From: Guillardia theta CCMP2712
Lineage: Eukaryota; Protista; Cryptophyta
DNA length: 64,000 nt
Assembly: GCF_000315625.1 (NCBI RefSeq)
Contig: NW_005434621.1
Span: 330,246-394,245 of the forward strand
Reading direction: 5' to 3'
A model generated the notes under the pieces. That model searched no databases and was not told the origin of the DNA. It saw only the letters and a list, made by a program, of their open reading frames with translations. A program made the position numbers and the translations under genes. Every line of letters starts with the position of its first letter. The stretch's first letter is position 1. Shown piece after piece: positions 36,992 through 42,067 of this stretch.

Positions 36992-37503
36992 GTTGCCGTC
37001 TCTGCCGCTTCCGAACTGCCTCAGTGTGCAGTCTAGGCACTTTCTCGCTAGTGCCCTTGAAAGTCATCCTTTCTTCCTCCCTCCCTACCCTTCAATACAT
37101 AATCTCTCAGCGCTGGATCCGTGGTTGTTACTCCTCCATCAGCTCACTGAGGATCAGGTATGACGAGTCGATTTAAGGCTTCTTTCAGCTTCATACCATG
37201 TAACTTGCTCAATCGATACACGAGTGAGGGAACATCTTGATTTTCTACTCTACAAACTATCTATCCTTCTGACTATCACTGAATGCATATTCGTTGAGAC
37301 AATGCTCATTTACCAATCCACAGCAAACAAGCTTGACCTTCTTCAGGAAACAGAGGCAGGGCCCCAAATCTATCTCATCGACATGGGAGAACTCGATTGC
37401 ACCCATTTCACTCGAGCAATCAGATTTTCATGATACAGAGTTGTATTTACAAGTCCAAAGAGGTGTGGAAAAACCGATGTTAAAATGACTCAAGACTACA
37501 TGA

Positions 37504-37842
37504 CTAAGAGCAAGTGTCTGTGGACGTCCTGGGAGTCAACACGAAGATCATAACGACGAAGATGACGTTAATAACGAACATGCTTGCTACTATCCAGCAG
37601 TAAACATCATTGAGTTTCGTCTGCACAGTGTCGTTGCCTTCTTTGGCGGTGACCTCTTCCTTGCGACATGCCACGGCGGGTTTTGCTGCCGAGTCGAAGA
37701 ACATGAGGTTGTGCTCAGAGGATACCAGTCCCAATCTCTTTGCGAATTCTTGATGTCTTTCTTTCTCTCTGAAGCTTCTCTGCCCCTCCTTGGAGTATTT
37801 CAACAATTTCACCGCTGAGTTCACTTCCATAAAATCCACCAT
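37504..37842 (-). CDS. Small hypothetical protein with a C-terminal TM helix
   Basis: ORF with hydrophobic tail WIVASMFVINVIFVVMIFVL. Confidence 0.45.
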   Translation of the reverse strand: MVDFMEVNSAVKLLKYSKEGQRSFREKERHQEFAKRLGLVSSEHNLMFFDSAAKPAVACRKEEVTAKEGNDTVQTKLNDVYCWIVASMFVINVIFVVMIFVLTPRTSTDTCS

Positions 37843-38600
37843 CCTTGTCAAAGGCGAACAAATCGATTGAGCCGACAGACCGGAAACGATACGATAAGAA
37901 TCTTACTTTTCAATAGTAGCCTTCAAACTAGAAGAAGATTCTGCGAGCAGAACTCAACACTGTAATTGCTGCGAAAAAAAATCCTTGGAACCCTTCTGTG
38001 AAACCGGGAAAGCTGATGAGAACGAATTGAAAGGAGGGAAGACCAATCGAGGGGTCGAAACGTTAGGAATGCGGAGGAGAGGTGGGAAGTACGAGTGAAG
38101 GGATCGAGGAACGCGTGTTCAGATACCAATCGCTGCGACTCAGGGAACCAAAGGGTCGAAGGGCAGCCAAGGAGCAAATCGAGGACGGCTGTGTTGGAGG
38201 AGCAAGAGGAGCGTTTCACGAGATGAGGGGTGAGAGGGTAGGGTCAAGGGGTAATATCAAAAATGGGGGTAGTGATGGGTAATTTGTGGGGTGCAATTGA
38301 ACGATTTTCGGTAAAACCTAGTGGAGGGTGGGTGCATTTCAGATGCAGGCCTCCTTGTGATCTCTCATCTTTACTACGAAAATCAGCGTATCTTACGTCA
38401 GCGTGTCATTCTATGTCTGTGTTTAAGTCTCGAAAATAATTCTTTTCGAGCTGTATCGTGTGACAAACGTATATGAGGACCCCTCCATTTGACTAAACAA
38501 ACCCACCCCATTTAATTTTGACCCCTTCTATTGTGTTTTAGTTTTATGCAACGTGACATGAGCGTGACCGATGCTCTGCATCGTGACAACTCCGTGACAG

Positions 38601-38951
38601 TAACTTAAACTACAGAGTCGTTAGATGTTGACGAATACCGTACTACCAAGTGCTGTAACGATTGTGGTTCTGAGCTCGATGTGCTTCGACGGATTGAAAA
38701 TACAGGGAAAGAACCAGACGAGACCTGTAGGTTGAAAACAAGGAAAAGTGAAGTACGAGGATTGAAATTTTGCAGATCATCGAGGTAATGTCAAGTTTTG
38801 TATACTCCTGTAATTCACCTTTTCATCTAACTGTTATCGTGACAGCTGTAAAGGAAAGCCGATCAAATCCAGGGACTTGAATGCTGCACTGAATATACTC
38901 ACTTGTTTCAATGTGTTTCCTGAAAGACCGAATCACCTACGTCGCCCCTGA
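38601..38951 (+). pseudogene. Fanzor1/TnpB-like RNA-guided endonuclease, C-terminal fragment (RuvC-II, Zn finger, RuvC-III) with one spliceosomal intron
   Basis: 38624-38784 DVDEYRTTKCCNDCGSEL...EVRGLKFCRSS; intron 38785-38845 (GTAATG..CTAAC..ACAG); 38846-38951 CKGKPIKSRDLNAALNILTCFNVFPERPNHLRRP*. An apparent +1 frameshift separates NYRVV from DVDE. No RuvC-I is visible upstream. Confidence 0.85.
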
Positions 38952-39270
38952 GGTGAATTCAATGATTGTTGTCGCCCCCTCCCTACCCAGACTGCGTCCC
39001 TCGGGACTCGATGCCTAATTCCCTGCCTGCCTGCCTGCCCGGTGCCTGCCTCCATTATGATCCGATGTTTACGACATGTGATCATTGAAGTGACTGACTG
39101 GCATCATTTGGTAGGATTCATGTAAGGCTCCAACAACATCCGAAGACAATTTGGCAAAAAAAAACAACTGCCGTTGTATGACGGAGAGTCGCGGCTCTCA
39201 ATCATACGACGGCAGTTCTGTGCGAAAACTTAGTTCGTCGTTCAGAAGGGTATTCACATATTCCGTCACA
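38952..39270 (+). ncRNA. Candidate omegaRNA (Fanzor guide scaffold) / element right end
   Basis: Immediately 3' of the Fanzor stop. 16-bp stem 39166-39181/39202-39217 (one G-U) with inner GAGAGT/GCTCTC stem. Boundaries inferred. Confidence 0.5.
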
Positions 39271-40096
39271 TCATGAGGGAGAGTACCCGTGGTAGATAGA
39301 TTCGTGGCGTTTATCTATTAAACTACCCACCTAGGCTCTCCTAGGAGAATGAGGGGGTACTGCTCGGGAACAGACACAAAAAGATCATCCCACCCCAATA
39401 ATCCCTATGACTACCCTACCCTTTCCCACATAAAATTGCAGTCACGGGACGCCGGGGGCTGGATGATTGACGTGTGCCGGGCCCGGCGTGGCCCGGGGCG
39501 GCACGCCGGCGGCGGGCCCGGCGGCCCAGACACTGTTCACGGTAGGCTTCACGGTCCGTTGGTCGGATCAGGGCCCGGCAGTGTGTGACCGTGACGCCGG
39601 CGGCCTGTGCGACAGTGTCAGGGTCAAGCCTCCTCGACTCTCCTGATTGTCCTCGTACTGATTTTTAACTTAACTTTGAGTAAAGAAGACTCTGTCACTG
39701 AAGTTCGCGGACGTGCGGCCCGGCCGCTGGCGCCATCACACTGGCTGTGGCGAACTTCGGAACGGTCCGTCGCCGGCTAGTCCACCGTAACTCTGAGGCG
39801 GCGGCGCCGCGCGCCGCGCCGCCGGCGCCGCCGCTGGCCCGGCCCCGGCTCAGTGCCTCGGACGGTGACTGCCAAGTTTCGCGGCCCCGAGCTGTTCACA
39901 TGAATGACGATTGCTGGAGTTTTATTGGATTCGACCACTGTACGGTAGGGAAGGGTTGCAAAGGCTTGGATTGAGGCTTTCCGTCGATGCTCCAGGATGG
40001 TACGGTCGGTGGGATAACTGACCGCCTGCCGCCGTCATTGCGTCACGTTGAATGATTTTATCCGATCAGCTGAAACGCGCAAATGAAATTCCAGCC

Positions 40097-40639
40097 TCAG
40101 TGTTCAGATTCAGCTTGGTGCCTGCAGTAGAGGAGCAGTCAGCATCGGATGCAATTCATAAACAAACCCCATTACTTCTGGCGGTTCGCGGCATTGGCTT
40201 TCAATGCTCCTGCACCTCCGGTGAACATAGGTTGCTGGATGGCTGTTGTTGCAAATGCAAGTCACAAGCTTGTAAATACGAGATATTCTTGTCCCATGCA
40301 CCTTCAAAGTAAGCTTGTGCAAACTCTTTGCAGTTGTCCTTATGATTCACTCCTTCTCTGCGTGAAGGCTGCAAGTCAACGGGGATTGAGCCAGAAGAGA
40401 ACGGAGCTATCAAACCTCCTATAGCATTCTCGGAGGAGATGCCTGAGGTGTCTTGCATTCATAATCTTGAGCCATGCATCCTTTGCCTTCTTCTCGCGAA
40501 TGTTTGCTGGGGCAAGAACATCATTCTGTAAGCAACGTAAGTTTCATCCATGCTGTAGTGCCAAACCAAAAGAGCAGACCTCGGACCCAATGGGAAAATC
40601 AAAGTTGGCAGCTCCGATCGGATCGAAGGCTTTAGGCAT
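40097..40639 (-). CDS. NDUFB10: NADH dehydrogenase (complex I) beta subcomplex subunit 10 (PDSW), 4-5 exons
   Basis: Spliced by eye: MPKAFDPIGAANFDFPIGSE/NDVLAPANIREKKAKDAWLKIMNARHLRHLLRECYRR/EGVNHKDNCKEFAQAYFE/ALKANAANRQK. CYRxEGVNH is the family signature. Not assembled in the ORF track. Confidence 0.85.
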
Positions 40640-42067
40640 TCTGTGATATCAATGCAATGGATCAGGAATCGTGCGCAGAGAGGGTGAGCATGATAAAAGA
40701 AAATGAAGAAATATAGGAATATTATTGAAGGCGTCGGGAACTCTTGTGCAATCACTGTCGGTTCCGATGTACCCAACATTCATCATACAGAAAGTGTAAA
40801 ATGAGAAAGTATTCCGTATGATTCGAAAAGTTTCAATACAACTATGTACAAAACATCCTCGGTGTCCGGATATCAACACTGGGATGTTTAGCGTAAGAGG
40901 AAACATTGCTCAACACTTGAAGGAGCACTGGTTTGTCTGATCTAGCTCAATACTGGTATCTGATCTTATAAGACATGTCTCTCCATTCAATTCTTGATTA
41001 TGTCTCAGTGCCAACAAGTTGTTGCCAGGTCTACGTACTGGTTCAGTCTCAGCTCTCAATGATAGTTTGCCCCTTTGGGATGTTGCCATAAATTCATTTC
41101 ATCTACATTACATGAGGAAATCATTTTCCATCATCTTTCTCTCATGTGAATGTAAAATCTCCATAGATCTGTTAGCGTCTCGCCTGATGTGTCCATTGCT
41201 CACCGAACAAAGGAAAACGAATTCCAGTTCAATCTCCTCATCAATCCCCTCTTCACTCCTCTCCTCATCCCTCCCCCTCCCCTCTTCTGGCCCTTCACCC
41301 TTTCTGTCTCTTCCCCCTCTTCCACACTCCTCCACCATCTCCCTCTCTGCTTTCTTGTCTCTGCCTTCCCCTCCCTTTGCCTCGCCTACTTCCGCCATTT
41401 CGTTACTACGACAGAGGCGACGCTATACAAATCTGTGTGAGACTTTTTATTTTGCTACTGATTCCCTTCCACGTTTACAAAGTTGTACTGTTATTTATAA
41501 AATATCTACATATTCAATACAATTTGTATCATATATGTATACAACACTGCTTTTAAAACTGCCGCTGCATCCTAGAAAACTGCCCCGGCCCACTGCCAGT
41601 TCACGGTTCGGGCCCGAACCCGGGCCACCGCCGGCCCAGTTCGGAACTGTCGGCCCGGCCGGCCCGGCCCCGGATGATGTCCGAAGTTCGACGTTCCCAA
41701 TCAAATCATGAGTCAGTTTGGGCTCCCTGATGTAGCATATTGATCCCACTGTCTTATGTAACATTGCCACCTGTGTCTGTCTATAAGATCCCCATCTATT
41801 CTTTTGTATCAGTAGTGACAACAATCCCATCTATGTACATTCTCCTCCTCTTCCAACCTTCCTCCTCTCCTCGATCACCTTGCTCCTCCTCTCATTCCAT
41901 CCTAGAAGTGCAGGTAACCGTCTTGCCTCTCCTCCTCTCCCTCCCCTTGCACCTCTCCCTCCCCTCCTCCTCCTCGTGGTACTCCTCCTCGTCATCGTCA
42001 TCGTCTCCGTCCTCCTCTCCTCATCACTCCTGCGCTTCTCGCACATGTTGCTCGTGCTTTGTCCTTG

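Follow-up and report, generated by a model that had tools for sequence, protein, structure and literature searches.

A truncated Fanzor1 transposon in the window

The stretch of DNA analyzed here (the window, 64,000 nucleotides) is eukaryotic in character, with short GT..AG introns, many microsatellites, and about 52% G+C. On its forward strand it carries a fragment from the right end of a Fanzor1 transposon, recognized by homology to full-length copies on two metagenome contigs, L001 and L002. The following features were assigned to the fragment and its borders:

38604-38608, + strand: CTTAA motif at the end of the left flank, candidate target/TAM motif, of the same form as the CTTAT/CTTAA before the full-length left ends
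38605-38613 and 39318-39326, + strand: 9-nt direct repeat TTAAACTAC, spanning both fragment junctions
38609-39321, + strand: right-end fragment of a Fanzor1 transposon, 5′-truncated, 713 bp, by homology to L001/L002
38609-38784, + strand: remnant of the long coding exon with the zinc-finger/TNB part (..DEYRTTKCCNDCGSEL..LKFCRSS), 98% identical to residues 578-632 of the protein P0001
38785-38845, + strand: intron in the Fanzor coding sequence, 61 nt, GT..AG, from RNA contig joints
38846-38951, + strand: last coding exon with the RuvC-III motif SRDLNAALNIL, stop codon at 38949-38951
38953-39114, + strand: 3′-UTR intron, 162 nt, GT..AG, beginning 2 nt past the stop codon, from an RNA contig joint
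39115-39321, + strand: structured non-coding tail, 207 nt, candidate omegaRNA scaffold, with five consecutive stem-loops
39140-39154, 39167-39216, 39217-39246, 39248-39288, and 39290-39320, + strand: stem-loops of the tail in the minimum-energy fold
39166-39217, + strand: hairpin with a 16-bp outer stem that includes one U-G wobble, then a 2x2 internal loop, a 6-bp inner stem, and a CGCG loop
39322-39341, + strand: right flank (ACTACCCACCTAGGCTCTCC), would-be guide in case of read-through of the tail, at unique DNA depth and past the end of similarity

Window positions 38609-39321 were 99.0% identical to L001 2208-2925 and 99.9% identical to L002 2067-2778. The sequences differ only by an additional T at 38621/38622 of the window and by 6 nt inserted in L001, and no further homology to the window was found in the rest of the two full-length contigs. 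The two upstream reading-frame pieces of the fragment correspond to the C-terminus of a TnpB/Fanzor protein (..VDEYRTTKCCNDCGSEL..LKFCRSS, followed by SCKGKPIKSRDLNAALNIL..stop), with the zinc finger and RuvC-III as the only nuclease motifs kept by the window copy. Between the stop codon and the right end, the non-coding tail measures 370 nt unspliced and 208 nt spliced. An earlier interpretation made from the letters alone (the sequence-only reading) had taken the locus for a dead Fanzor with a broken ORF. The ORF proved to be 5′-truncated rather than decayed: because 712 of the 713 bases match the full-length copy on L002, the locus is, judged by this alignment, a clean 5′-truncated copy of an apparently intact element and not a decayed gene.

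A retrocopy origin of the fragment was ruled out, since both introns are still present in the DNA. Further decayed Fanzor exons were considered at 37224-38600 (e.g. YLIDMGELDC and VVMGNLWG) and rejected, as this region is single-copy DNA with a minus-strand host transcript and no homology to L001. Minus-strand host transcripts flank the fragment on both sides. The left one (37425-38166) has its poly(A) tail at 37425 and contains an ORF (37504-37851) that ends in a hydrophobic tail; the right one (39844-40800) belongs to a highly expressed gene with introns of 54-59 nt.

The full-length element family

A full HMMER search with a 59-aa piece from the window returned a single close relative, P0001. 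This protein of 632 aa is 98% identical to the piece over its 55 C-terminal residues and was located on both L001 and L002. P0001 matched the Spizellomyces Fanzor1 SpuFz1 (PDB 8gkh) with an E-value of 1.1e-6 over residues 375-604; its AIDPG aligned to the IDP motif of SpuFz1 RuvC-I and its VDEYRTTKCC to the zinc-finger region. The full-length copy contains AIDPG, CCNDC...FCRSSSC, and SRDLNAALNIL, corresponding to the RuvC-I Asp, the TNB zinc-finger cysteines, and the RuvC-III Asp, respectively. The rearranged RuvC-II Glu was not located in this copy, and the Pfam Cas12f1-like TNB domain scored 14.4-14.8 bits against a curated cut-off of 26.3. By homology and motifs, the family is a Fanzor1/TnpB-type RNA-guided nuclease element. 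Its full-length copies encode a nuclease of about 665 aa, i.e. P0001 plus one last exon; on L001, the full-length element spans 210-2925. The family is an uncharacterized, young, and multi-copy Fanzor1 and is apparently active.

More distant relatives were few. None of P0001 were found in a scan of metagenome contigs, and a word-index protein search with P0001 gave two relatives only (25-26% identity), while the same search with the C-terminal 203 aa gave none. Looking up a small ORF of the repeat by exact match returned no contigs. The 3′ regions of the distant relatives on L003-L005 were not alignable. We also noted that in the distant relative P0006 (25% identical to P0001), a RuvC-III motif, ..NRDKNAAYNI.., lies downstream of the called stop (L004, about 2060-2100; also on L005). 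It seemingly sits in a separate last exon, as in the window, and the intron position may be conserved and have been missed by gene callers.

L001 and L002 are 2 SNPs and one 6-nt indel apart. Their left flanks are unrelated (L001 1-210 versus L002 1-69), and a G+C-rich right flank is common to both over at least 144 nt (L001 2926-3069). Two separate copies, a segmental duplication, or chimeric assembly of the repeat may explain this pattern.

Copy number and right end

Other genomic copies, among them a paralog of about 80% identity, were visible as depth and as joints in the DNA and RNA runs. The DNA unitig covering 38668-39320 had a k-mer depth of 60.6, compared with 3.9-5.3 in the flanks, which indicates about 12-15 near-identical genomic copies of the family. 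The hairpin at 39166-39217 had originally been described as non-repeat. This holds inside the 64-kb window, where it is single-copy, but not for the genome, where DNA k-mer depth shows it to be repeated along with the rest of the element.

Similarity to L001/L002 ends at ...TCTATTAA (39321). Three different continuations follow ...TATTAA: ACTACCCACC... in the window, GTGGATTCC... in L001/L002, and a third flank in an RNA contig that is window-identical over 39113-39323 and then continues with 192 unlike bases. From 39322 onward, the right flank of the window is at single-copy DNA depth. Aligning the copies to find where conservation stops had been proposed as a check, and similarity was seen to stop at 39321, which on this comparison marks both the element's right end and the border between scaffold and guide, 51 nt past 39270. 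The interval first proposed as a unit (38952-39270) accordingly contains the hairpin but does not form a unit: it opens with the 162-nt intron and ends short of the right end.

Whether the hairpin is kept downstream of other Fanzor copies received a divided answer. It is present in L001/L002, but a diverged, single-copy, and expressed paralog, which aligns over 39185-39324, skips 39136-39184 and with it both the A-run and the hairpin's 5′ arm, so that the hairpin may be dispensable.

The hairpin and the structured tail

The hairpin is formed by the arms AACTGCCGTTGTATGA (39166-39181) and TCATACGACGGCAGTT (39202-39217), with one U-G wobble between them. Both its inner stem, GAGAGT/GCTCTC around the CGCG loop, and the weaker next stem, TTCTG..CGAA/TTCG..CAGAA at 39217-39246, were present in the minimum-energy folds, in agreement with the pairing first noticed in the sequence-only reading. 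The 111-nt fold of 39150-39260 reached −42.8 kcal/mol (z −6.0), and none of 200 shuffles was as good. Folded singly, the hairpin was near strand-symmetric, with z −8.6 on the plus strand and −7.9 on the minus strand. It is a real structure, far from chance expectation, and it lies 105-156 nt upstream of the right end. A run of nine A (39156-39164) directly precedes it. Read on the minus strand, 39156-39217 gives the hairpin followed by G and nine T, a shape that recalls a terminator of antisense transcription, of the intrinsic or Pol III type.

Beyond the hairpin, the whole tail (39115-39321) folded at −71.4 kcal/mol, with z −6.1 on the plus strand versus −2.7 on the minus strand. Taken singly, the fourth stem-loop (39248-39288) scored z −4.2 in sense versus −1.0 in antisense, and the fifth (39290-39320) −8.8 kcal/mol in sense versus −2.2 in antisense, with z about −3 on both strands. 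This sense-strand bias of the predicted folds speaks for a function of the sense-strand RNA. The last stem-loop extends to one base before the element boundary. In the three tail copies compared (window, L001, and L002) the sequence is identical except for the one 6-nt indel; the L001 insertion sits near the apex of the fourth stem-loop and does not alter the architecture. No Rfam family reached its gathering threshold in the whole window, nothing significant was found at E-value thresholds in 38600-39400, and the hairpin had no matches in JGI metagenome contigs and IMG/VR.

Possibly, the hairpin is a functionless palindrome carried in a recently amplified repeat. Near-identity of the copies would follow from their youth, so that conservation is uninformative on selection, and one paralog has lost the 5′ arm. 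We nevertheless give this explanation little credence in view of the five contiguous stem-loops, the z-score of the whole tail, a structure that stops exactly at the element boundary, and at least one neighboring stem-loop (39248-39288) that scores well in sense only.

Transcription and splicing of the family

Runs X13 and X9 behave as RNA, with spliced joints that are missing from the DNA run X1 and without intergenic coverage. The joint of the intron 38785-38845 was found in RNA contigs of X13 (depth 18.4) and X9 (17.5), and that of the intron 38953-39114 in X9 only (two contigs, depth 10.9); neither occurs in the DNA. Unspliced RNA contigs covered 38983-39296 and 39002-39142. Sense-spliced RNA contigs lie over the tail, and taken together the contigs reach across 38983-39323 at low depth. 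The Fanzor family is transcribed and spliced in the sense direction, with the hairpin in the last exon. Thus, the ORF and the structured tail are set apart by a spliceosomal intron of 162 nt, and spliced and unspliced forms were both seen. No description of an intron between a Fanzor ORF and a candidate omegaRNA was found, and its presence is among the observations that the locus contributes.

An additional RNA-only joint, at 38846-38902, has CT..AC ends and occurs in contigs that retain the sense intron. It indicates that in some family member the last Fanzor exon is crossed by a spliced antisense transcript, and therefore sense and antisense RNAs of the family coexist. Spliced transcripts in both orientations, together with a stem of 22-24 bp and weak Rfam matches to the miRNA precursor models MIR5274 and mir-559, would suit a precursor from which small silencing RNAs are made, whether these are miRNA-like or siRNA against the Fanzor family. 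The two matches reached just 22.9 and 20.8 bits, however, below gathering scores of 100 and 95, and the hairpin is just 52 nt long. We regard such a precursor as highly improbable.

None of the sense transcripts among the RNA contigs could be assigned to the window copy. RNA contigs had zero depth over 38168-38530, left of the repeat, no sense contig bridged either fragment junction, and one RNA contig differed in a paralog-specific way and had 77 upstream bases that do not match the window. In a stranded raw RNA run, coverage was at most 0.5x over 38168-39256, and the unique flank (39257-39498) had practically only minus-strand reads, with 0.2x on the plus strand; the strand convention of this library was inferred from the minus-strand genes nearby and their poly(A) tail. 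Toward the right end, contig depth falls without a peak there. Long-RNA libraries would miss a small structured RNA, so that the lack of a sense transcript of this copy is weak negative evidence.

Fragment junctions

The junctions of the fragment read CTTAA|ACTAC...TATTAA|ACTAC. The 9-nt repeat spanning them occurs only twice in the 64-kb window, at the two junctions, and consists of TTAA, common to the left flank and the element end, and ACTAC. The ACTAC at the fragment start comes from within the full-length gene; ACTAC also opens the right flank. CTTAW has a frequency of 4.4e-4 per base in the window. In the full-length contigs, the differing left flanks end with CTTAT and CTTAA, followed by a common CCTTTAATCG....

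Comparable arrangements are known from Chlamydomonas reinhardtii. Its Fanzor1 elements CRe-1/2/3 are often 5′-truncated, with a 3′ end that is almost always intact; their variable TSDs begin right after a target tetranucleotide, and the pattern was described as 'one-ended transposition' (Bao and Jurka 2013, PMC3627910). Non-canonical duplications have tentatively been tied to Fanzor cleavage (Craig, PMC10288648). Like CRe-1/2/3, the window copy combines an intact 3′ terminus with a truncated 5′ side and a short direct repeat right after the target motif. It comes from another alga and another element family, and its repeat of 5 nt (ACTAC), or 9 nt with the shared TTAA, is close to the lower limit of the 7-19 bp of CRe-1/2/3 or falls short of it.

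A GC-rich inverted repeat at 39479-39497 and 41619-41637 was examined as a possible pair of transposon ends and rejected, as just 19 nt match.

Comparison with characterized Fanzor1 guide RNAs

The RNAs that co-purify with Fanzors (fRNAs) stem from the 3′ non-coding region next to the right end; this also holds for the Klebsormidium nitens Fanzor1, KnFNuc, whose TAM is TTA (PMC10530073). The solved Fz1 omegaRNAs are 75-150 nt long and have an SL1 that is always 7 bp; that of GtFz1 has 150 nt and four stem-loops, and the scaffolds of PpFz1 and SpuFz1 are 75-90 nt (PMC11423790).

The tail in the window resembles these RNAs (KnFNuc, CrFNuc, GtFz1, SpuFz1, and PpFz1) as a structured non-coding region from the ORF end to the right end, with a guide that would come from the flank. 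Its last 156 nt hold four stem-loops, as do the 150 nt of GtFz1, in keeping with a scaffold of the GtFz1 kind, and the CTTAW flank motif is compatible with the TTA TAM of KnFNuc. KnFNuc is described as intron-less, whereas the family here, which is known from sequence and transcripts, has a spliceosomal intron between stop codon and tail, and it is therefore probably a different family. Further differences concern the hairpin itself. Its 22 bp stem contrasts with the 7 bp of SL1 and would be unusually long for an outermost stem, and with a position of −156 to −105 from the right end it would fall outside a scaffold of 75-90 nt as in PpFz1 and SpuFz1, and would be at the limit for GtFz1. Both points argue to some extent against the hairpin as part of the scaffold.

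Taken together, the hairpin is one of five stem-loops in the 207-nt tail of a young, multi-copy Fanzor1 transposon, and this tail is most likely the template of the family's omegaRNA scaffold, with the flank past ...UAUUAA as the would-be guide. At this locus, the tail is most likely an inert by-product of incomplete element copying and not a dedicated guide gene. We assign this explanation as a whole, i.e. a Fanzor1 tail that is likely an omegaRNA scaffold and is truncated and probably inert here, a probability of roughly 0.6. From its position, its structure, and its likeness to characterized Fanzor1 systems, the tail is probably the omegaRNA template and would as such bind the nuclease. The big hairpin would be the outermost of the last four stem-loops, which take up the final 156 nt or so of the element; the odds that it is retained in the mature RNA appear slightly short of even. 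The sequence-only reading had proposed an omegaRNA at a stand-alone locus. Its first half fits the place of the hairpin, in a structured tail between stop codon and right end, where Fanzor scaffolds arise (PMC10530073); the stand-alone half did not fare as well, as described below. The locus provides a precisely bounded candidate scaffold (39115-39321) for this Fanzor1 family.

Alternatively, the hairpin could act in cis, in the transposon or in its mRNA, and lie outside the mature guide RNA, either as a subterminal hairpin for a rolling-circle/HUH-type transposase acting in trans, or as a 3′-UTR processing or stability element that marks the omegaRNA cut. Its near-equal folding on both strands is like that of a DNA palindrome, and its distance to the right end is larger than in most known Fz1 scaffolds (PMC11423790). 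Hairpins occur near both ends of the element, the left one being an 8-bp hairpin about 16 nt from the left boundary (L001 225-244, GGACTCCC / GGGAGTCC-type). The pattern of truncation and TSD also resembles Helitron2-borne Fanzor1 elements (PMC3627910). Helitron2 has asymmetric terminal inverted repeats; terminal inverted repeats of the full-length element were considered here and rejected, as the inverted similarity between its left and right ends was not significant (p 0.37). Against a cis element, the hairpins used by Helitrons and by IS200/605 transposases lie within about 10-40 nt of the end, a place occupied here by the stem-loop 39290-39320; no transposase was identified; and the diverged paralog is without the 5′ arm. 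On balance, we consider a cis element unlikely, though with a real chance of being correct, and retain the omegaRNA template as the preferred reading of the tail.

Proposed guide supply from the truncated copy

The idea that this locus supplies guides in trans to an intact Fanzor elsewhere found support in the sequence of the tail, which is identical to that of the intact copy on L002; an RNA made here would therefore be a cognate scaffold with a new 3′ flank. It was not borne out by transcription, as the RNA runs show no locus-specific sense transcript and the promoter has been lost. In its full form, the proposal says that the fragment is a stand-alone omegaRNA gene, whose transcript with the new flank guide is loaded in trans by the Fanzor of intact copies, which implies a non-autonomous homing element or a new targeting function. 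In addition to the 100% identity of the scaffold region, the Fanzor family is expressed, 38167-38608 is possibly a bidirectional promoter region of the upstream minus-strand gene, and 20 additional conserved fRNA copies have been reported in C. reinhardtii (Jiang et al., PMC10530073). On the other side stand the lack of RNA contigs over 38168-38530 and of sense contigs across either junction, a stranded coverage of at most 0.5x over the fragment with minus-strand reads in the unique flank, and the loss of the gene's own promoter from the fragment. Comparing the flank guide with host and viral sequence had been suggested as a further check. The would-be ACUACCCACC... guide (39322-39341) had no second match in the 64-kb window with up to 3 mismatches beyond its own flank and no match in viral contigs (IMG/VR), and the only TAM-plus-target site expected for it is an empty allele of the same locus. 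A stand-alone omegaRNA gene is thus an improbable interpretation of the fragment.

Non-autonomous derivatives are familiar from bacterial elements. TnpB-omegaRNA homing of bacterial IS200/IS605 elements was reportedly described by Meers et al. in 2023. PATEs are TnpA-less or protein-less IS200/IS605 derivatives, which are non-autonomous and have kept their ends. By analogy, the window copy is like IS200/IS605 elements and PATEs in that the guide would be the right flank, the TAM would lie at the left flank, and a non-autonomous derivative keeps its ends. Unlike in the bacterial elements, the host is a eukaryote and the gene, known here from sequence and transcripts, has spliceosomal introns. 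As outlined in a preprint on IS200/IS605 homing, the guide corresponds to the right flank and the TAM to the left, and cleavage of the vacant site promotes re-copying of the element (10.1101/2023.11.20.567912).

In a further reading, the fragment is a working non-autonomous OMEGA unit, with low or conditional transcription, loading in trans, and a guide that directs cleavage of empty alleles or look-alike sites; we consider it very doubtful. If true, the nuclease would be spread or redirected in trans by solo omegaRNA loci, which in eukaryotes would parallel the transition from a TnpB with a fixed guide to guide arrays. As in CRe-1/2/3 and the fRNA copies of C. reinhardtii, the putative RNA-coding end here outnumbers or outlives the nuclease gene. 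The locus adds one member to this pattern known from Chlamydomonas and is no new kind of system.

Origin of the fragment

The junctions offer a possible account of how the truncated copy arose. First, a vacant site consisting of motif and target would be cut at a distance from the motif; second, the right end would be re-copied inward from another copy; third, synthesis would abort; and fourth, the nascent strand would anneal via ACTAC to the remaining target. That the junctions are the footprint of Fanzor cleavage of a vacant site with incomplete re-copying, a reading from this single locus, appears rather unlikely, but it is better supported than the working non-autonomous OMEGA unit. The window contributes one clean truncated copy whose junctions, with a target-like motif and a repeat of the first flank bases, are comparable across genomic copies. 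Such a comparison bears on whether RNA-guided cleavage shapes element copying, and the locus thereby touches on the biological role of Fanzors in eukaryotes.

Farther into the right flank, we also noted a sequence of ~85 nt (39602-39687) with a DNA k-mer depth of about 17,000-46,000, compared with about 4 for single-copy DNA, which is present in RNA contigs as well. Many of its joints lead back into itself and its flanks differ in dozens of ways, which suggests a hyper-abundant repeat, either dispersed or in tandem.
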